Source: Bigelowiella natans CCMP2755
Taxonomy: Eukaryota; Protista; Cercozoa
Length of the DNA: 64,000 nucleotides
Assembly (NCBI GenBank): GCA_000320545.1
Contig: ADNK01001529.1
Span: 36,807-100,806, forward strand
Reading direction: 5' to 3'
In this document: positions 7,621-33,121 of the stretch, one piece after another
Layout: the number at the start of each line of letters is the position of its first letter
Numbering within the stretch: the stretch's first letter is position 1
Program-made: the position numbers and the translations under genes
The notes under the pieces: generated by a model
What the model was told of the DNA's origin: nothing
Database searches by the model: none
What the model saw: only the letters and a program-made list of their open reading frames with translations

Positions 7621-8100
7621 GTGTCGAGACTGCTTTGAGCGATTACAACTGAGCAATGTTCTCCCAATGGAACCAGAGTTTCGAAAGTCACATCTATTAA
7701 TAAATGCAACCGCTTGCATATGAAATCTCGTATCCGACGAGCTTTGCTGCCCCCCGTCCAGATCCGGGGCCTTCCCTGGGAAATTGAAACAAGGATTCTA
7801 TAAGTACTTCAAATACGAAAATATTGAACCCGGAAAATTTATTTGAATTGCATTATCTAATACTGATACGAAAGTTAACAGTATTTTGGTGCAAGTCAAA
7901 AAGATGATGTCACAACCGTGGCAGTTCTCCCCTACCACCAGCAGATGATGGAATCTGCATCCCCTCCAAGCGGCCTTCAACCGTTGGTTCTCCAAGATTG
8001 TACTTTTTCATTGGCGGTGGATGGTCTGGTTGCGCGTATCTTCTGAATTGAGAAGCTTTTCGGCTTCAAGCTCGTCCGGATGTCATGCGGTCAACCTTCC
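139..8100 (-). CDS. Very large multi-exon EF-hand protein with three near-identical EF-hand-pair modules plus coiled-coil/low-complexity linkers; runs off the window start; 5' exons (5.6-8.1 kb) approximate
   Basis: ORFs 3502-5592, 2200-3327, 1700-2059, 1252-1734, 858-1145 and 139-867 are separated by GT-AG introns; the 28-nt intron 1744-1771 and 38-nt intron 858-895 were checked and preserve frame. The EF-hand loops DTNKDRLISFQE and DTDKSGKVDYKE each occur three times. Confidence 0.7.
1225..1540 (-). repeat. EF-hand module copy 1 (includes adjacent intron sequence shared with copy 3)
   Basis: Near-identical to 3475-3790 and, over the coding part, to 2362-2600. Confidence 0.9.
2362..2600 (-). 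repeat. EF-hand module copy 2
   Basis: Same nucleotide sequence (atctgttcggatagtcgtccagaaaagcc...cccacttatc) as copies 1 and 3. Confidence 0.9.
3475..3790 (-). repeat. EF-hand module copy 3
   Basis: Matches 1225-1540, including the non-coding catatacatatacaattctaataaatttc tail. Confidence 0.9.
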
Positions 8101-8699
8101 GAGAGTGAAAGGTGTGATCCAAGACATAAAATTAAAGATGTGAACAGGATAGCTAAAACTTCTATAACCCACAATTACAACCCTCAGACCCTCCTTTTAT
8201 CACTCCTCTGTGCCCCTTCAGGAGAGAACGAGTGTGCTAATTTAGGGGGATAGGAACCTTCCAATTTACAACTTCCCGAATGTTATCTGGGTGTTGAAAA
8301 AGGGTATTTTCGAAATACATTTGATTTTGCGGATGCGTCTGCGTTTTTTCAAGCCATAATTTGATAGAGAGACCTGAATCTGGAATTCCCTCGCCCGTTT
8401 TAAAGATAGTGGATCTTAATCTCGGTGCCCTAATACCTTCCCGCCGTTTTGATTTTATGCTCGCCTGAGGGCAGGATGTGCTTGCTAATTTACACACTGC
8501 GACAACAATTTAAAAGTTACCGCTTCAAAGAAAACCCACGGCGTCTATTATTACGGCAATTTCACTCAGTCTCCAGTCTCCAACCTCGCACACCTCGTAG
8601 CATCAGGTGCTCCTTAGCAGCTTTTAGGTGAGAGCTACGGCGCCTCGGGCCCTCCCTGGGAATTCCCTTTTGGCAGGGTATATCGCAGATCGGATTTTG

Positions 8700-9528
8700 A
8701 AGTAAACATGATCTGAGTACACGTCCATGCGGCCGCTAAATTGGTCATGAAGCAATAAGAAGGAGAGAGACAGAAAAGAACAGAATACCGACCAACCCGC
8801 CGCAGTTCAATGTTAAATCGGTTGCGCTACGGGAAAATTGTCGATATCATTGGAGGAGGACCACAGGTGTGACAGCGCTGTCTCTCGCTGTTAAGCGCTG
8901 AAGTCTTGTGCTTCATCTTCAGTTTGGCCAACTAAAATTGCCTTTGTAAACCAAGGAGGCCGGGTGCCCGTGCTGTGGAGTCTTTGGTATGGATGGGAGG
9001 GATATCAAGGTAGCGTCAGACATTATGTAGCTTGTTGCAGCGGTAAAGGGGATTTATGTATGTCTTTATGATCTGCCATTTAGGACCGAATGATGGTCCC
9101 AGCTCGACCAGAGGCATGGAAGAAGGGGGGGGGCTTAAACATAGCATCAAAGAATCCCGAATCTAAGGAGAGTGAGAGTTTGGAGGGAAAAAAGAAGGAG
9201 GAGAAGGCGAAGAGATCATTCTCTATCTTCTCCTACCAAACAACGTCACAGTTGTTATGCTCGAAAGCAAACTTCCCGAAATCCGTGCCATCGGCATTAA
9301 AGTAAGCACTTGCAAGCAAAACTTGAAAACGGAAAAAATTGAAAACGGAAAAAATGTCAACATATGGTATAAAGTGTGATATATGTTTAGAGAGGGGAGA
9401 AAAAGAGAGAGAGAAGATGGGATTTCATATGTATTTTATATGAAAAGACACGTTTGCGCGTCTGTAAGTGTATAATTTATATTAATTATAATTTGTATTT
9501 TCACACACACACGCACACACATATATAA

Positions 9529-22900: not shown

Positions 22901-24436
22901 CACCGTTTCTGTGCGCCACGTTGCTATTTCTGTTTTCTGCTGATCCTCGCGTTTCCTTCAAGATTCGCTCCAGCATCATTCCGATGAGTATTTTCGGGTT
23001 TTGAGACTTATTGCTATTATGCGGTAGCGCAGTCTGCGTCCGTCCTTGACCTGTGAGCGTTTGGTGCTGCTACCTAGGGTGGTGGGGCCCGAAGCTGTAG
23101 AAGAGACCACTCAGCCGCCGGGTATTCTCACGTGGGCTGCTCTGGCTGTTTACAACGTTACGGGGGACTTAGACTTCCTCAGAGACGCGTACGAAGTACT
23201 GGCGACGAACAACGAGTGGTTCTACGCGAACAGGAGGTAGTATTACTCATCTCGCTCCGCGGTGTGCGGTGTGGGCAGGGTAGGTGGAGAGGGTGGGTTA
23301 CTGTTGGGATGATGTCGGCATCTTCGTGCTGTCGATGATAACAAAGCGATGGGGCGATATGTGACGCGTGTGTACGTGTGTGTGTGTGTGTGTAGTGTGC
23401 GTGTGGTGTGTGTGTAAGTTGTCCCACTCACTGAACTCTCGCCCTCCTGCACTTGTTTTGGTGTTCTTCCTTACTTCTCCTTTTTCTTCTTCTTGTTGTT
23501 GTTGATGTTGCTCTCTTTTAATTCCCCTTCGCTCCTTCGTTCTCGTTGATCAGCACGAGGAGCGGACTATGCGAATGGGAAGGTCAGGATAGCGGCTGGG
23601 ACACGTCGCCTCGTTGGGATGGCGGCAGCGTGGAGGCAATCGATCTGAATTCATGGCTTCATCTCGACCAGGTAAGGTGTTGCTACGTCTGTGTGCCAGA
23701 CTGTCTGGTCCCCCCCGCCGGAGACAACTTCCAAAAAAAGGAAAGACAGAAAGAAGGGGTGGCGGGTGGGGGAGGAATGGCACAGTCCTAATCACACTGC
23801 TTTCTCGTAAAACAGCTATTCTTGGCCGCCATGGCTGAGGCCATCGGACTCCCCCCTACCGAAATAACAAAATGGAAGCTAGCAGCGTCCAGGAGCCGCG
23901 AGGCCATCCAGGCACGTCTCTGGGACGACGATGCTGGGGTCTTCTGGGACCGGCGCCCTTCGCCTGACAACCGGTTTGTGAGCGTGGTGACACCGGCCAC
24001 ATTCTGGCCGATGCTGGCTGGCATTGCGAATGCGACTCAGTCGCACCGAATTGCGGAGCGAGTCCTCACCAAAACCGCGCTGCTCACCCCGCACCCGCTC
24101 TCCAGCGTAGGCCGCTCAGAGCCTGCCTTTGATCCTGAAGACTACTGGAGGGGGCCCGTGTGGATAAACGTTAACTGGCTTGCTTCGCTAGGTCTCCATT
24201 GCTCTGGTCTCCATAGCGACGCAGAACTGCTGCTCGATGCTGCCGTGGAGCTGGTAGCTAAGTGGCCGTATCCGTGGGAATACTACGACCCCATGACAGG
24301 CGCTGGCCTGGGCGCTCAGAATTTCATGTGGACGGGGGCTGTTAACATCATCATGCTGAGCGACAACCCATTGGTGCAATCGCTATTGTACCGACATATG
24401 GAATGCGATACGATGCACAGCAAGTCGTCGCATTAG
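21058..24436 (+). CDS. Secreted glycoside hydrolase, GH63/MGH1-like (alpha/alpha)6 barrel
   Basis: Signal peptide MGRFHYLCLLLVASSEA; motifs YGRGVWLWDTAFH, TQPP, SGWDTSPRWD, YWRGPVWINVNW and WEYYDPMTGAGLG across exons. Confidence 0.8.
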
Positions 24437-24872
24437 ATAGTGTATGGCTTCTTGCAAGCACGAGAAGACTTCTTGCAGTAGTGGATATGTATAACTTTGA
24501 TCAATGTAGTTTTTGAATCACAGTCGTTGCAGTGTCAGCAGCATTGGCAGCGGCAGCGGTGGCAGAGGTGGTGGCATCCGGAGCAGAAGTTGTTGCATTG
24601 GGAGTGGGAGTTGTGGTGTTGGGAGCAGGAGTTGCAGGAATGACGAGTTTTGGTTTGCAGATGTTTCATCGACCGTTGTCCATGATGATCCAAATCTAGG
24701 TCGTTCCAGCAAACGACAACGGTGCAGCAGAAGCAAGTGAAGAAGGAATGTCGTTGTGCTTTCATTCGCAACCGTAGTTTTTGAAAGATCAAACACTGCA
24801 CTTTCCTTTGATCTGTCTAGCTGTGGCATTCCTTGCTAGCTTGTCGTCACGTGCTGTGCGTGTTGATGCATT

Positions 24873-24976
24873 CTTGATTGTCCACTTTGGAGGCAAAAAT
24901 GGCCACGATCGACGCAAAATGCGATGCTTGAGAGCGCTGCCAAAAGCCAAAGTTGCGATTGCGCGATGCGACATGG
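24873..24976 (-). repeat. Orphan inverted copy (~104 bp) of the transposon right end
   Basis: Reverse complement of 32571-32674 with about 8 mismatches. Confidence 0.85.
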
Positions 24977-25198
24977 TGAGCATTTGCATGCACATCTTTG
25001 ATCGACAGATCTGCACGTTGTGCTCCAGTGATGCTAGTCCAGATCGAGCCACTTGCGATCAATTCCACAGGTCTAGCGAGGTGCACGTTTGTGTCAAACA
25101 CAGCTAGACAGTGATGACAGGTCCACAAAGTCGGCGCGACTTGCACGACAAATTGCAGCGGATTCAGAGCAATGTGCGTTGCGGCCATGCTAGCACAT

Positions 25199-25218
25199 CT
25201 TGGTTGTCCACTTTGGAG
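25199..25218 (+). repeat. Left terminal inverted repeat
   Basis: cttggttgtccactttggag. Confidence 0.85.
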
Positions 25219-25967
25219 ACAAGAACCACGCGCCGCGAGTTGCTGAACCCACGTGTGAAGGCTGCAAACGCGCTTCGTTGCGCAATCGCGATCACGATCG
25301 CCACACGTGCGTCGAAAGCAAATCAAAACTCCCACGCAAACGCGAGCTCAGATTGCAATGTGTGTGAATGTGAAAACCATCTCGTGAAACATGACATGAA
25401 GAATGTGCGAAGTGCAATGACAACGGCGATGTTCTCTTCACAAAGCGGAAACGTGTGCACGCCACATGCGGTCATGCCATGTGTTCCATCTGAGCAAAGT
25501 TGTGCGCATGGCGTCGAGTGCCGAGTGTGATTTGCATCATGTCAGAACAAACAGCATTTGCAGCGTTCTACACTCGACATTGCAAGGCACAAATGATGCC
25601 TTTTCATGCCAATTCAGCCGCGTCAATGATGTGTCACGAATGCACCAGTGCATTCGCAACATTCAGCCGAGAACAGCGACATGCATGCGTCTCATCAATC
25701 TCCAGACAGGCTCACAAGGTCATGAGAGAATGCCACAAAATGAACACGTCTCCATGTGTGTGACTCATCCAATCAATCACAAAAACTGCCATCATCATCA
25801 TCACTGGAAGACAACATGAAAATGTCATCTCCACTGCTGTCATCCATTCCAACATCAGTGTTGGCATGAGGGTCGGCGCACATGGGTTTCGGTGCTTTGT
25901 CCAATCTCCTTGATTTGCGTGTTGGAACCTGATGGAAAAGACAGTTGATGTGTGAAAATGAGCTGAT

Positions 25968-28441
25968 TCATGCATGCAACGTCACCGAGCTAGTGTGAGC
26001 ATCTCGTGAAGTGTGTTCTTGGAGTCTTTGCCTTCTTGTTGCGTTGTGAACAATGCGCAAATCTGCGCCAATTGATGCTGAGCTTGTTTCATCATCATTT
26101 TCATCGTGTTGCATCGCATCTTCAATTGAACTTGGTTCGTCGCTGTCATCGTGTTTGTGTTCACTCGTGTGGTCTGTGCTGGAACTGTCTGATTCATGCT
26201 CGGGGTGATGCCTAGCCATGTTGCTTCGAAACCATTCTGGGCCAGAGTGAATCAGCTCAATGATTTGTTTCTCGAAAGAAGCGATGTGATGCTTGATGCG
26301 GGTTTTGTCCATGCAATTGGATTGTTGGTTGAGTTTTGTTTTGTGCATGTCAACATTGTTTGCAGTTGAATGGCATTTGTTGCAAGTGTGTTTCACGTCA
26401 TCGTCGTGCGATGATTTGTCTTTCACAACTTGAACAAGGTGTTTGATTCGCTCCATGAACCAATTGGATGTCTTTTGCAAGTTCGGAGTGTTGTTTCTGA
26501 TTTCTGGTTGTTTCCGCTGAAGGTGTCCTTCTCCCATGGAAGTGCAAAATGTTTTGGTGCTGTTCCACATTGTTTTCATGATCTTGAAACATTCATTTGC
26601 ATGTTCAATGTCTTTGGAATGGGTGTCCCGAATCACTTTGCGACCACAAATTGACAACATGGATTCACCAGGCTCTTCATTGCCATGATTTGGACTTTTG
26701 CTGAAGTTCAACCAGAAATCAGTGGAGGCATTTCGGTGCATCTCAAGAACAATGTGGTTCATGTGTGTGTTCCTTCCATGTTGCCTGTGTCCAAAATTGG
26801 CAAAAGCTGCCATGACATTTTTGTGCAAACTGAAAAGCATTTGAAAGTCGTCGACTTTCAAAGCGATCATGCAATCATGTAGCAACGGTGTGCAAAACCG
26901 AAGCAAAGAGCACCAAGAATCCAGTTCTTCCCTCTCTGGGATGTGTTGTCGATGAACGCTGCAAGCTGGACACTTGTCAAACGATTCTTTGTTGTCAATG
27001 TTCCAGTTGGCATCCAAAATCTCGTCCATTTCACATTTTTTACCAGAGTGTGTCACTCTTAAGAGTGAAAAAAAGTGCACAATGTGCGCGATGTGCTTTG
27101 GTTTCGATTTCCATTTCTGCCCAGGGCACAGTTTTGCAAATGATGGCATGAAAATGTCTTTGTAGCTTCTCCACACGAGCATGGAAAGAAATTTGCAAGA
27201 GTGCCACCATCCTAGAACAGGCATGATCAGGTTCCTCACATCCAAAATGTGCAAACTTTTTGACCAAAATGCCTGAGCAATGACACACAAGGTTGCGAAT
27301 GTGCCAGTGTGTTCGTGACAAAGTGGAACATTGCAAATGACCTTCAAAATCCTTTCACAAATGGCTGCATCCGAAACCACCGTGATCATGCAATTTTGTG
27401 GAATGTTCTGTTTGCACAAGCTCAATGAAATCTTGAATGGTCCTTCATTTGCCGAGACGTTGTGTTCGTTCATCTCGCAAGGTTGCACATGTGATGGAGC
27501 GTCGACCCGGTTTTTCACGGCCTTGATGCATGCGTTCCTTTTCTTTTCATCTGCCACACATCTCATCACAGTGTCCACTGTCACTTTGATGGGCACATGC
27601 CTGATGTCCCATTTCAAACACAAAGCAACACCGGACAAATTGAACTCAGCTTCGTCGATGAAACGCATGAACCAATTGGATTTGTCACTGAACAATGAGG
27701 TGACATCACATTGAGGATGTCCCTTCTCAATGTGCCAACATGGTTTCTTGACAAAAGGACAGATCACACTCGGATGCTTCTTAACAGCTACTGCACACCA
27801 TTGACAGTTTTTGCACACATTGTTTCCTCTTGGCATTTGAACTGCCAACGCTTTCCCGTGATTGTCAATCCACATCAAGCTCAGTTTTGATTCTCTGATT
27901 TCTGCATCATTCTCAACACGGAGTTGTTTGCATCTCCTTGAGAATGAAGATTTTCCACCACCAATCCCAATCTTGGACAAAAGTTTTGCACCATTTAATG
28001 ATGAACCTCTGAACCGTAATGACATCAACAAGTGTTTCCACTTGGATTGCAACCGCTTGTGCTCCACACTGAGAGCCAGGAGACCCATTGAAACAAAGTG
28101 TCGAATGCACGTGTTGAGATTCTTTTGATTCAATGCACATTTCAATTGTGAACAATGAGACAAATCCCTAAATGTGTTGCATTCTGTCTTCGATGCGAAG
28201 TGGGTGCAGAAAATCTCGAACAACTCGAAGCCAAAGAAACCTGTTTGACAATTGCAATGTCGTTTGTTCATTGTGAATGTTGTGAAGCACACCTTCAGTT
28301 GGGAACAATCTCCTTCCGACTTGAAAAACATCCAAATAAATGTCATCCGATTTGGATTTCATCAAACTCTTCTCTAGTTCGACCAATCTTGTCCTGAATC
28401 CTTTCCATGTGAATCTTGACTGACGACGTTCATTCTTTCCA
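25968..28441 (-). pseudogene. DDE-type transposase (DUF6589/Academ/KDZ-like), hypermutated, probably non-functional
   Basis: 792-aa ORF with motif order WIDN...VVSD...MPVLGWWH...NEEPGE, resembling the D/D/(GxxH)/E layout of DUF6589-type transposases. It has only one Tyr and abundant Cys/His, and reads through an in-frame 69-nt intron (27273-27341). Family assignment is by motif recall, not by search. Confidence 0.6.
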
Positions 28442-31400
28442 CTGATCACAAACATGTATCATGAGTTACGAACATACCAGTACATTCGTAACACAATTTC
28501 TTGAACATTATTTTTGCATTGTGAATTAAAATAAGATGTTGAGTTGAATGTGGATCTTGAAGTTGCATGTTCAATTACATGTTACTTAAAATGACAACAA
28601 AGTGCTTTTTGTAAATTAGGTCAATGAAGAAGCTACGAGTACGAGCCGAAAAATTAATGTTTAAAAACTTTAATTTTTCGTTCGTGACGTTTTTCGTAAT
28701 TTCACCGTAATCACAAATACAAGAGGAGATCACTTGTTTGGCGCCTTGCAAGAGGGCACTCTAGAGTATCACGTGCTCCGCAGCACATTTCGGAAACATT
28801 CGATTGTGCACGCCCAACTACGCTTACTCACGAACCTCATTATGCCAAAGCAAGGATACGGCAAGCTCGACCATGAATGTGAGGGGTTCAATTTTGGGAA
28901 GTGTTCAGAACGTGAGACGGGGTTCGGGTGACAGACTTACACTTTCAATTAGAACTCGCAGCTCACATTGTTCACATCACTGACCATGCCGTGTTTGCAT
29001 CACCTTCTAGGAAAATGCACTGTTTTGGATTCTGTCTGGTGCTTCTCTCGCATGACAGATCCGAACAACCATTGGCAGCTGCACGTCCAACAGCCCGTCG
29101 AAGCAGGCAAGCGGGCCCAATGGAAAAAGTGTGACGTGCACGCGCTGAAGAACACCGAGCGCCGCCAAGTCGCGAACCAGAAAGTGCTGAATGCGCTCAC
29201 CGCGTCGGTGTTTTCCCCGGATGCTGGGAGGGAAACATTGGGTCTTGAACTTGACAAATGGGTTGAAAACAGCGCCATTGCAAGCACAAGATCCAATGAA
29301 CACGCCAAGATGTCTCAATGCAAATCAAAACAAGGCATTTGACAGCATCTTCGCTTGTTTCAAAATGGAATTCTCAAATGTTGCTGTTGTCAGATGTTGC
29401 AAAGGAATTCAAGAAACACCTGAAGAATTTGAAGAAACTCCGCCAGGAACTTGCATCTCAAGACCAACCAGAATCGGTAGTGCAATTTCATCAATTAAAA
29501 CATGGTGACGAATGTGCTGGTACATTCGTAACATTGAAATTATTCTTTGAATAGTCGTCATCATCTGTGCCAAAGACGAAGGACAAGACAACTCCGGGCA
29601 AAGATGCGCCAAGTCAATCAGACTTGAACCTCCAGGGTGATCTTCCAGAAGGAATCACCATTGAAGGTCTTTTGGTTTTTTCACTTTCGTGCGAAACAAC
29701 GTTGACTGTCTTTTGGTTCAGAGTACGAAAAAAATGTGAAGGAAGGAGATGATGCCAAAGTCAAGCTCGGAGCAGAAATGGAGGCATTTGTTGACAAGAT
29801 CTTTCTGGGGACATGCGAGCTGAAGCTGGACCAGCTTGTCGGTCCGGAACATGGGAAGACAGCTTCTCGGAAACTAAGGCAAGGGGAAGTGCGCAAGATT
29901 CGAGATTCAATGATGAGGAACCGGTCTGTTCACATTGTGCTTGGCGCACTTATTCGCCCTTCTGCGCCCGTGTACAAAGAGAAGCAAACTTCTCTCAAAC
30001 GTTCACGGGTGGAACTCAAGCAATTCGTGTCGGAGAACACACTCCAAGTTCAAGATGGCATCTGGGCGGAAGTGATCGATGGGAATCACCGCCGCGTCGC
30101 ACTGCAAGAACTACTGGCAATCCACAATTCTAAACGTTATCGCAAAGTTACTTGCAACGTTTTCTGCACAGATGACCCAGAGGACAACAAGATGATCCGC
30201 AAACATGGTCATCTTGTCAATGAAGCTGACAAAATCAGCATCAAGTCCACAGTGTGGGATGCCATCGCCGAAATGAAGACTAGCTACCTGGAAGCCAAGG
30301 CATTTGATACCAGGTTGGGTCCGACTAGGTTTACTAAAGAACACATTGGGGACTGGAAAGAGCTCACCAGCTCGCATTCCAAAGGTGGTTACGGTGCGAC
30401 CTACCTTAACTTGGTGGTTGGACTCGCACAGTGGAGCGAACACAGCTGGAACCTTTTGGAGAAATTTTACAACCCAGGACCCAACGATGTACATGACGCA
30501 CCCAAGGACTTTGAATGGATCAGCAAGGTTCGCGGAATGGACGAGAAAGATTACACGACAGAGATCAAGAAAGTCACAAGCCTCAAAGATTACACCATCA
30601 AGCAAATGATCGTCAGTCTACAAAAGAAACAATGTGAGTCATCTTTTTTGTTTGTGTCACTGTAGCCTTAGTTCTGGCGTCATCTGTGTTTCAGGGTCCA
30701 AATACCTCACAAGTCTTTTCATGAAGAAATGTGACGTGTCATCATGGGAGGCATCATACGAGAAGTTTCAAGTTCCCAAGAACGACAAGTGGCTCAGTTT
30801 CGCAATCCAGTTCCACCTTGTCAAAAACAAGATGGCTCCAGAGAAGAACAAGCGAGTCATTCCAGAGGTTGTATTGAACAGTTTCCAGAATCATGTTGAT
30901 CAATGCAAGGCAACACGTACGATGGAGGATGCAGAAAGAATTCAACTCAAGGAAGATGCGATCGAGCTCAACATCGTCACCGGAGTCGTCGTCAAGAAAC
31001 TAGGGATCGTCATGCAAAACAAGGGCAAATCAATAAGTATGTACTTTTTTTTACAGTTACGAATGTACCAGTATTTTCGTAACACTGTACTTTTTTATTA
31101 GATCACGTCTTTGTTGACACTCTTGTTGGAGCTTTCGATATCGGGCAGTCTTTCGACGACAAGCAACTCAACATCTACGTCAACAAGATCCATGCTGGCA
31201 AACAGCTGGATTTTGATCGCCATATTACTGGCGACTTCACCCTCACCATTCGGTGTCTCCCTGAAAACTCTAACTCTTTCAGTGAGCTCATCAACAAGTG
31301 TGGGTATGACGACGTCGACGTGCTCTATGCATACGAGCACGATCGACGTCCACAAAAGCCTAAGACCTCTTTCGCTCCGATGATTGACGCATACATCATC

Positions 31401-31950
31401 GCGAAGAACGGGTCTTACGCGCAAGTGGACTTTGGGAAGCGCGAAAACCTCATCGTCACTTCGAGTCCAAAGTCCATCACCGTGGACGGCAAGCTTTTCG
31501 CGGTGGATAGAAAAGGCGATGTGATGGAACATCTATGCCTTACTTTGTATGAGGAAAGATCTACTGTCCTCATTGCCCATGGTGGGCAAGGGTTCGACGC
31601 GTGTGCACTGTTGCACTTCACACGCAACTGCATTCAGTTGAACCGCCACCAGGAGATTACCAACCGCACCAAGGCCAAAGTCCACTCGATGACTACAACT
31701 AAGGATCCATCTTCTCAAAAAGCGCTGTTCGAGACCAAGTTCAATTCCATCTTGACCAAGTACAGTGCCCTTCAAAGTTTTGGAAAGCACTGGCATGACC
31801 TTGGCCGCATGGAGGGGAAGAAGCTCGCTGGTGGATCCGACGACGAAGAAACATCTCTTGTTGATATCGTCAAGAAAAGTGTCAGTGCAGCCAAAGGCAA
31901 AGGTATACAACTCATTTTGATTGTTACTTGTGTACTGGTATATTCGTAAC
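27292..31950. repeat. Five dispersed copies of a 28-bp palindrome (consensus GTTACGAATGTACCAGTACATTCGTAAC) at 27292-27319, 28465-28492, 29505-29532, 31056-31083 and 31923-31950
   Basis: Copies read directly from the sequence; each lies inside a predicted intron of the element's genes. Confidence 0.9.
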
Positions 31951-32252
31951 CCATGCATTTCTCAGGTGAGAAACGCCCTCACACTTTGCGTGCCAGAGTG
32001 TCTCCTGCGAAGAAGGCCAAGACCGCCAAGACTGTGGGCAAGTCCATGAAGCGCCGCACGTCCGATCCTCCGCAGTGTGGCTTTTGCAAGAGGCCCGTTT
32101 TGCCCAACGAGCTTGGGCGATGTGCTGAATGCGACGAGGTCGGCCACAAGGATTGCTTGGCCCACAAGAGCATCAAGTTCAAGTTGCGATTCTGTTCTGA
32201 AGACTGCAAAAACGCGTACGAACAGATTGCTCACGCGGCAGCAAAACTTTAG
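28842..32252 (+). CDS. Transposon-borne ParB/Srx-like domain + degenerate beta-class N4/N6 DNA methyltransferase fold + PHD finger protein (multi-exon; start approximate)
   Basis: EVIDGNHRRVALQEL is the ParB GxxR motif. The exon from 31101 has DHVFVDTLV (motif-IV position) and then RKGDVMEHLCLTLYEERSTVLIAHGGQGFDACALLHFTRNCIQLN (motif X/I-II layout). The last exon has CGFC...CAECDEVGHKDCL...FCSEDC. Exon junctions at ~29335-29392, 29477-29554 and 29667-29721 were checked and keep frame. Confidence 0.7.
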
Positions 32253-32654
32253 ACAAAAAAAAAAAAAAAAATTGACCCATTTCTGTGTGTCTCATCGCTT
32301 TCCTGATGAGAAAAAGCTCTGTCTATGGTCTGTTCATCCTTTTTTGGCCACCTCATTTCAATCTCAACTGCATGTATTTTTCAATGTAAATTCATTCAAC
32401 ACAACATTTACATGCACAATTTTTCTTTGATGCATTTCAAAACGCGCTTCATTTTGCAATTTGCTGACTTGCCTCCGTTTGCTCTCGCATCTGCCATGCA
32501 CATGTTTGATTCGCTGACCCATTTGCACGTGTTCATTCTCATGCTGCGCTGCGTTCGCGATTTTTCCCCGCCATGTCAGTTCGCGCAATCGCAACTTTGG
32601 CTTTTGACAGCGCTCTCAAGCATCACATTTTGCGTCGATCGTGACAATTTTTGC

Positions 32655-32674
32655 CTCCAAAGTGGACAACCAAG
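32655..32674 (-). repeat. Right terminal inverted repeat
   Basis: ctccaaagtggacaaccaag, the exact reverse complement of the left TIR. Confidence 0.85.
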
Positions 32675-32835
32675 ACATGTAGTTGCCAATTTCACAACTC
32701 CATGCCATGTGCCATTCATTTGCGCACTTTCTTTGACGACCGCACACGCTAGCACGTTTGCAACGTAGCAGGCGCCTACGAAAGCCACTGGCGCTAAAGA
32801 ATGCTTCGCGACTAGCATTGCAGCAGTAGGCGCAT

Positions 32836-32879
<44 letters not shown>

Positions 32880-33121
32880 ATGCTGACTTTCGTCGATCAC
32901 AAACTTGACGAATCGAACATGTACTCTCTGCAACCATGCTGAGAGTTTAAAGACATGTATTCCGTATCAAGCATCAGGATTTGATTGATCCAGCAAGTAC
33001 CATCATCATCGCCATCGAACTCATCGTTCCCTGGCTTGAAGGTAGTAGCACTAATTTCAACATCCCTCCAGTGAGAACAACGACGATGCCAACAAATGAC
33101 TGCCCCCTAGGTGGTAAATAT

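Follow-up and report, generated by a model that had tools for sequence, protein, structure and literature searches.

What erases a single dinucleotide from a mobile element, how is the erasure aimed, and where does it stop? These questions are raised by a 7476-bp class II transposon of Bigelowiella natans CCMP2755, found in a stretch of 64,000 nucleotides of contig ADNK01001529.1 (positions 36,807 to 100,806; this whole stretch is hereafter the window, and coordinates count from its first letter) and sitting, to judge by the sequence, in nuclear DNA. Across one half of the element, TpA has nearly disappeared. An initial annotation, made from the letters of the window, had ascribed this loss to a repeat-directed, processive A-to-G mutator resembling the repeat-induced point mutation (RIP) of fungi but opposite in direction. 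We consider it highly probable that the transposon was disabled by host-side hypermutation of TpA to TpG or CpA, in place and independently in each copy. A mutator programmed to make A:T→G:C changes at TpA mirrors fungal RIP and is unusual among eukaryotes, and the credit for it belongs to a 2026 preprint: the core phenomenon is correct but already published for B. natans (Mettrop et al., bioRxiv 10.64898/2026.01.13.699255). The locus provides a natural experiment, in which five copies of one young transposon were mutated separately. Context preference, lack of strand coordination, stop points (often a terminal inverted repeat, TIR) and an uneven action that tracks transcription can all be read from it.

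In the mutation-accumulation experiment of Mettrop et al. in B. natans, 231 of 302 nuclear point mutations fell in integrated giant-virus and virophage regions, and nearly all of these 231 de novo mutations were TpA→TpG or TpA→CpA, at a rate about 1000 times background (bioRxiv 10.64898/2026.01.13.699255). Hypermutation was on in only 11 of 15 lines, and the main hypermutable target was a 186-kb viral insert present as a single copy. The authors also listed 324 low-TpA genes and 124 TpA-depleted clusters (1-kb), compared the process with RIP, and proposed a defence acting through adenine deamination by an ADAT2-like protein. Their low-TpA Table S6 includes the JGI Bigna1 models 147291 and 92025, both paralogues of the window transposase; model 147291 (EukProt B. 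natans P0002) maps at 99% to C222, one of the copies analysed here. In the main text of the preprint we found no mention of copy-by-copy histories, TIR boundaries, CTAG refractoriness, strand non-coordination, mosaicism within a copy, splice-site damage in sister copies, or the relic open reading frame (ORF) of a DDE transposase.

TpA depletion within a DNA transposon

The erased tract (24508–28456, no strand) covers the transposase half of the element together with 691 bp of left flank. It holds 23 TpA, against about 224 expected at the background observed/expected ratio (o/e) of 0.77 (tract o/e 0.08, Poisson P ~3e-66), and is enriched in TG (o/e 1.70) and CA (o/e 1.75), with CpG ordinary at 0.77. 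Computed in bins across the window, TpA o/e falls to 0.10, 0.03 and 0.09 in the three kilobases from 25 to 28 kb, far below the 107 bins outside the region (mean 0.77, standard deviation 0.18, minimum 0.44), and, ranked by length, the top seven TpA-free gaps of the window all lie within the transposon. Beyond the tract, the region between two divergent genes (28457–29000) keeps 29 TpA (o/e 0.59), and is followed by a converted island within the right half (29001–29400, 1 TpA; all 12 ancestral sites between 29070 and 29382 converted), a second island without TpA (32001–32200) and a TpA-poor right end (32300–32750, o/e 0.15). These tract and per-kilobase ratios bear out the scarcity of TpA and excess of TG/CA reported by the initial annotation at 24.5–28.4, ~29.0–29.4 and 32.3–32.75 kb. 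Its explanation of the long ORFs also stands: they occur in many frames because TAA and TAG have become rarer in the erased DNA (2.5 and 7.1 per kb, vs 24 and 22 in the background, about tenfold and threefold), while TGA rises above background to 55 per kb.

Comparison of flanks among copies resolves the target as a complete TIR DNA transposon (25199–32674, + strand). Its 20-bp TIRs (CTTGGTTGTCCACTTTGGAG; left, 25199–25218, + strand; right, 32655–32674, − strand) match each other perfectly in inverted orientation, and the target-site duplication (TSD) ACAT flanks the element on both sides (25195–25198 and 32675–32678). A search of the same-genome assembly (91.4 Mb, 3736 contigs) returned four further full or near-full copies and many fragments. 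TSDs of 4 bp were seen for three insertions, ACAT in the window, ACGG in C3106 and CGTG in C222, and for a fourth that is split over two contigs, C1576 and C142 (CTAG). Every copy and fragment of the family is TpA-poor, short derivatives included; the five aligned copies hold 125 (window), 17, 30, 0 and 27 TpA, the 0 belonging to the 8468 bp of C222.

Direction and independence of the changes

The aligned copies establish directly in which direction the sequence changed, at which dinucleotide, and that this happened copy by copy. Among the five copies, variation at 258 dinucleotide sites is confined to TA, TG and CA, an excess whose absence the initial annotation would have counted against its own reading. 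TG stands in some copies against CA in others at 133 of these sites, and all three states occur at 82. A split between TG and CA at one site implies a TA ancestor, and the alignment therefore supports a DNA-level, TpA-specific A:T→G:C process acting on the transposon, with TA lost rather than gained. The reverse history, in which C→T changes at CpA/TpG made the TpA of the right half from a TpA-free ancestor, can look convincing at a single site, where TA in one copy beside CA in four resembles C→T. It is nonetheless hardly credible, for at the 82 three-state sites the other copies split between TG and CA beside a TA copy, which needs a TA ancestor; restoring TA also recovers the symmetry of a palindrome and Tyr codons at conserved columns, and the laboratory mutations run from TA to TG/CA. 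The direction claimed by the initial annotation, opposite to that of RIP, thus agrees with the TG/CA conflicts, with the replacement of Tyr by Cys and His, and with the mutation-accumulation data.

The palindrome in question, of 28 bp, occurs six times in the element, in hypermutated form at 27292–27319 (no strand) and otherwise at 25633, 28465, 29505, 31056 and 31923. Intact, TA-bearing versions remain at 28465 and 31056, and three occurrences lie in the middle of short introns of the second gene (29477–29554, 31037–31101 and 31903–31965). TA at its variable sites restores perfect symmetry over all 28 bp, and a degenerate-pattern search gave 20 matches, all within copies of the family, vs 0 for the reversed control. 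The hypermutated copy reads as the initial annotation had described it, but the conversion to TG on one strand holds for the window copy alone, since the sister copies mix TG and CA.

Pairwise comparison gives the same picture. Between the window copy and C1576/C142, the sister closest to it, there are 262 base differences, of which 246 fall at TA/TG/CA sites; these comprise 72 sites with TG vs CA, 100 with TA in the window vs TG or CA in the sister, and 2 of the reverse kind. Elsewhere only 16 differences remain (0.2%), about 7 of which are second hits giving CG. Across the alignment the window copy retains 111 TA where sisters read TG or CA. Sites converted in both of two copies show the same outcome in only 38–63% of cases, so most conversions were separate events that followed the split of the copies; each copy was mutated from TA to TG/CA independently after insertion. 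Conversions amount to 2.4 per TpA site, vs a background divergence of ~0.1% per lineage. These counts rest on dinucleotide states, a singleton-parsimony spectrum having been dropped as misleading at saturated sites.

From the figures of the preprint we computed a rate of 211/(6169 TpA × 3132 generations), or ~1e-5 per TpA per generation. Mutating this fast, a copy would be cleared of TpA before ordinary divergence reached 0.1%, which fits the 0.2% seen. Among the scaffold-10 T>C mutations in Table S2, four lie in non-TpA contexts, ATG (3) and ATT (1) (bioRxiv 10.64898/2026.01.13.699255). T>C at TpG corresponds to a second hit, TA→TG→CG, of the kind also seen between transposon copies (~7 of the 16 residual differences).

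A putative DDE transposase stripped of tyrosine

The effect on coding sequence is most visible in a 792-aa ORF (25968–28346, − strand) that we read, from a structure model and conserved acidic residues, as the hypermutated relic of a DDE (RNase H-like) transposase. As the initial annotation had noticed, it contains a single Tyr and abundant Cys (5.1%) and His (6.7%), and these residues indeed stand where homologues have Tyr. Tyr in undepleted homologues is matched by His (22%) or Cys (22%) in the ORF, together 45% of aligned pairs, an enrichment of 3.7–4.6 times, and the conserved Tyr columns 384, 433, 492 and 523 read TGC, CAC, TGC and CAT.

Homologues of the ORF number 38 among 1.8 billion representative proteins. 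A homologue lies in a related chlorarachniophyte, Amorphochlora amoebiformis (contig L057, gene 8001–8770), with 6.3% Tyr and a TpA o/e of ~0.8–0.9, and there is no sign of TpA erasure at that locus. Three environmental contigs (L058, a 4598-bp seawater metagenome contig from ENA, L059 and L060) encode homologues at 25–28% identity and are TpA-depleted (o/e 0.03–0.5) and TG/CA-enriched (1.3–1.7). L058 has no DNA match anywhere in the B. natans genome. Since L058 is depleted yet unmatched, the same footprint seems to be present in another marine organism or strain; if so, the system would be active in wild relatives too.

These homologues bear on the idea that a TpA-poor composition is intrinsic to the element, whether through codon usage, the composition of a donor genome, or selection against TA, for example as a way of escaping TA-targeting insertions. 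All copies are TpA-poor and the ORF is open in several of them, as such an origin would predict. An open frame is however no evidence of selection here, because TA→TG/CA changes cannot create a stop codon. Single sites read TG in one copy and CA in another, 111 TA of the window copy survive where its sisters are converted, the changes extend to introns, intergenic DNA and flank, and homologues elsewhere have normal Tyr and TpA. Copy conflicts, pairwise differences, the replacement of Tyr and the Amorphochlora homologue together lead us to rule out intrinsic composition, along with the C→T direction discussed above, and we leave it a chance close to nil. Where the initial annotation allowed that host-like TpA, or homologues sharing the same Cys/His residues and TA-poor sequence, might tell against hypermutation, we found an o/e of 0.08 in the erased tract, TG and CA specific to individual copies, and a homologue with normal Tyr in Amorphochlora.

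The assignment to DDE transposases draws on structure. A Pfam scan of the ORF and ten homologues found no family, and a Foldseek search of the AlphaFold 2 (AF2) model (28 sequences; pLDDT 71, pTM 0.71) gave no match to PDB at E ≤ 0.001. Exhaustive alignment with VIA-align placed DDE transposases, integrases and other RNase H-like domains in nearly all of its top 35 rows, the best matches being the P element (Z 8.8), RAG1 (8.3) and Hermes (8.3) over ~290–350 residues, where a Z near 8 is borderline by the aligner's own note. Acidic residues are conserved across aligned homologues at D161 (15/16), D326 (17/17) and E557/E558 (14/15), and constitute a candidate catalytic triad that would still be present in the ORF. 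The element thus resembles DDE transposons with an inserted helical domain (P element, hAT/Hermes, Transib/RAG1) in the model alignment, the D/D/E columns, its TIRs and its target duplication, but unlike P, hAT and Transib it combines a 4-bp TSD with CTTGG... termini, and it matches no Pfam transposase family significantly. DUF6589 (PF20231) emerged as a language-model lead (ESM Atlas 0.96, 211 shared features), which one homologue only matches by sequence (E 0.0098), and its hidden Markov model (HMM) found nothing across the genome; KDZ (PF18758) scored E 0.0085, below the cut-off, on an ORF other than the 792-aa one, and a genome-wide search with the KDZ HMM likewise found nothing.

A cut-and-paste element of this kind also speaks against an origin in double-stranded RNA, edited by an ADAR-like enzyme and then reverse-transcribed into DNA. 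The 5′ U preference of ADARs and the existence of hyperedited retroelements in animals would favour such a route, which the preprint discusses as well. We regard it as very improbable, as the element has TIRs, a TSD and a putative DDE transposase but no reverse transcriptase, the changes postdate insertion and took place copy by copy, introns, the promoter region and the flank were hit, and the near-absolute specificity for TpA is unlike ADAR.

Strand, sequence context and chemistry

The initial annotation described the mutator as processive, and this was not borne out. TG and CA follow each other at random in every copy (runs test, z −0.8 to +0.6), and binned by distance, converted sites 2–200 bp apart lie on the same strand in 42–56% of cases. 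With no strand coordination to be found, the mutator does not look processive.

Sequence context, by comparison, matters strongly. Within the erased tract CTAG accounts for 11 of the 23 surviving TpA, vs 4.9% of background TpA, and across the four mutated copies retention is 27% at CTAG, 14% at CTAC/GTAG and 0–3% at ATA-containing sites (27% at CTAG vs 5% in other contexts, P 5e-6). Our hand tally of Table S2 in the preprint points the same way: G follows the edited A (TAG/CTA) in only 20 of 206 TpA mutations on scaffold 10, vs ~20% of contexts, an expectation taken from the host DNA of the window rather than from the viral region itself. We rejected a model in which the rate is governed by the base 5′ of the edited strand's T, A and C being equivalent (29:27) and only T over G significant (92:49). 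Because the flanking base fails to predict which strand is hit, the context effect looks like a property of the duplex tetranucleotide. ATAT and CTAG would accordingly offer concrete substrates for a biochemical assay.

As TpA is self-complementary, A→G on one strand is indistinguishable from T→C on the other. Given that the process is real, we put the chances of adenine deamination to hypoxanthine in DNA at about even. The chief competitor is oxidation or other modification of the thymine in TpA, for example to 5-hydroxymethyl- or 5-formyl-uracil, which would mispair with G and yield T→C. All of our counts fit either base, and the duplex tetranucleotide effect, with strand choice left unexplained by the 5′ base (A vs C 29:27), suits a modified thymine as well. 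5-formyluracil causes A:T→G:C transitions, and dinoflagellates place 5-hydroxymethyluracil preferentially in TpA. In the genome, by contrast, a search for TET/JBP enzymes returned a single sub-threshold match with internal stops (23.5 bits vs a cut-off of 34.9), against six CDA-fold loci and one ADAT1/ADAR-type locus, all candidates only, in the deaminase search; and the preprint names an ADAT2-like candidate (bioRxiv 10.64898/2026.01.13.699255). Neither point is decisive, and we judge thymine modification unlikely, though a serious contender.

Boundaries and the partly spared half

At 5 of 8 element ends TpA density is normal again within 200 bp of the TIR; at the remaining ends it stays low for 0.4–0.7 kb or more. 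Depletion spreads ~0.4 kb past both ends of C222, and in the window the tract reaches 691 bp past the left TIR. This flank includes a 104-bp relic, inverted and starting with its TIR, of another family copy's right end (24873–24976, − strand), beyond which 365 bp without any other match in the genome were also erased. Inside the window copy, 82 of 96 ancestral TpA were lost from the left half, while 97 of 162 (60%) were kept to the right of 28456, where the conversions are clustered (runs z −2.8). Exons and introns of the right half do not differ in this respect (converted/retained 19/23 vs 36/53, P 0.7).

These boundaries bear on the most direct analogy with RIP, in which pairing or counting of duplicated DNA would trigger the mutator. 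All copies and fragments of a multi-copy family are mutated, down to short derivatives, and the recovery of TpA density at 5 of 8 ends, inside 200 bp of the TIR, suggests a mutator that recognises the sequence of the element. But 60% of the TpA survives in the right half, which is equal in copy number to the left, erasure covered 365 bp of apparently unique DNA past the relic TIR and spread ~0.4 kb beyond the ends of C222, and the 186-kb viral insert is single-copy (bioRxiv 10.64898/2026.01.13.699255). Repeat status alone does not set the rate, and the claim of a repeat-directed mutator fails as originally worded; strict RIP-like targeting strikes us as improbable.

The two halves also differ in transcription. 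The second gene (28773–32515, + strand) is spliced and transcribed, as shown by spliced contigs from three RNA runs, several of which are letter-identical to the window copy, and its introns lie at 28879–29010, 29335–29393, 29477–29554 (alternative), 29667–29721, 30634–30694, 31037–31101 and 31903–31965. For the transposase gene, no RNA contigs covered 27197–28772 in three runs. Sparing therefore tracks transcription, the saturated gene lacking RNA contigs over that interval and the partly spared gene being transcribed and spliced, a correlation drawn from contigs only. Exon by exon, sequence searches of the second gene gave weak DndB/ParB-like and weak PHD-like matches only, and a methyltransferase, considered as a candidate, was unsupported by them.

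Hypermutation reached splice sites as well: sister copies carry GCA in place of GTA at three donors and TGG in place of TAG at three acceptors. The donor at 29335, flagged by the initial annotation as consistent with a converted GT, is used: the GC..AG intron 29335–29393 (+ strand) is joined in all three RNA runs. All five copies read GCA at this position, so that a GT ancestry, argued by analogy, would be plausible. A sister copy with more mutations yielded an RNA contig whose joint lies at 31033–31102, shifted by three bases and with three extra letters relative to 31037–31101, and splicing may have been altered there after mutation of the donor site. Exon 6 (31102–31902), which RNA contigs span without a break, is covered by two ORFs (window 31111–31949) whose frames differ and which overlap at 31320–31383, and for this reason the second gene of the window copy may be frameshifted.

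Mechanism and relation to known systems

On our reading, hypermutation on the host side proceeded as follows. A copy of the TIR transposon inserted, and its TpA were afterwards converted in place by A:T→G:C changes, either strand being hit with equal probability and each TpA being struck separately, outside any strand-coordinated run. The rate depends on the flanking bases, fastest at ATA-containing sites and slowest at CTAG, and conversion has reached saturation in the transposase half and 0.7 kb of flank, and about 40% completion in the transcribed half.

Several points weigh against this account. The genome offers candidate enzymes only, and the symmetry of TpA leaves editing of A and editing of T alike in sequence. 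A role in defence, which we infer, has to accommodate a process that was on in only 11 of the 15 preprint lines (bioRxiv 10.64898/2026.01.13.699255). The less mutated right half could instead be the product of recent gene conversion from a copy outside the assembly. As to present-day mutation, the differences between the window copy and a 2025 DNA run (X5, Logan contigs) are inseparable from paralogous copies.

The closest relative of the process is the one measured by Mettrop et al., with which it shares the organism, the TpA→TpG/CpA signature, strand symmetry, and loss of TpA with gain of CpA and TpG. There, the measured targets were one insert from a nucleocytoplasmic large DNA virus (NCLDV) and one from a virophage, the others being unannotated low-TpA genes and clusters, whereas the target here is resolved as a TIR transposon; in both cases mobile DNA is hit in a delimited manner, as the 5 of 8 ends that stop within 200 bp of a TIR illustrate. 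Fungal RIP, in Neurospora and others, is likewise a host process that produces transitions at one dinucleotide of mobile DNA, with a marked dinucleotide footprint and dead genes as the result. RIP however changes C to T, mostly at CpA, and creates TpA, the opposite of the A:T→G:C changes at TpA in the window transposon, and it needs duplicated DNA, a premeiotic stage and a cytosine methyltransferase-like protein, whereas the B. natans process runs in vegetative lines and does not track copy number. APOBEC3/AID and ADAR resemble it in that enzymes of animals edit foreign nucleic acid in defence and favour certain dinucleotides. APOBEC/AID enzymes act on single-stranded DNA and leave strand-coordinated C→T clusters, in contrast to the uncoordinated changes seen here in chromosomal DNA, and ADARs act on double-stranded RNA with a loose 5′ preference, in contrast to the almost strict TpA specificity of this DNA process.

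Such constraints help to choose among a single-strand deaminase, a duplex-acting enzyme, and chromatin- or RNA-guided targeting. Taken together, they may point to a non-processive mutator that acts on double-stranded TpA, is neither repeat-triggered nor APOBEC-like, works at a rate set by the duplex tetranucleotide (CTAG being refractory), and is steered to parts of an element by a silencing state that mostly ends at TIRs, can leak 0.4–0.7 kb into host DNA, and spares the transcribed half of the window copy. We offer this combination tentatively, as one that could easily fail in one or another of its parts.

Flanking gene and other members of the family

On its left side the erased tract stops short of host coding sequence: it begins 72 bp past the stop codon of a GH63/MGH1-like glycoside hydrolase gene, whose last coding stretch occupies 23822–24436 (+ strand). 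Elsewhere in the genome, C222, the oldest copy, carries an additional segment of ~880 bp at the window equivalent of ~31713. The C1576 and C142 parts of the split copy share 8 bp of the element (window equivalent 28004–28011), as if another element had inserted there, duplicating an 8-bp target, and the assembly had broken within that insertion. A TpA-free derivative of ~860 bp (C3601:131784–132641) joins the left end of the family to its right end and is like a non-autonomous deletion copy. Finally, a distant transposase paralogue (C1447:90107–91973, 28–29% identity) is also TpA-free, and erasure has therefore reached at least two families of such transposons.

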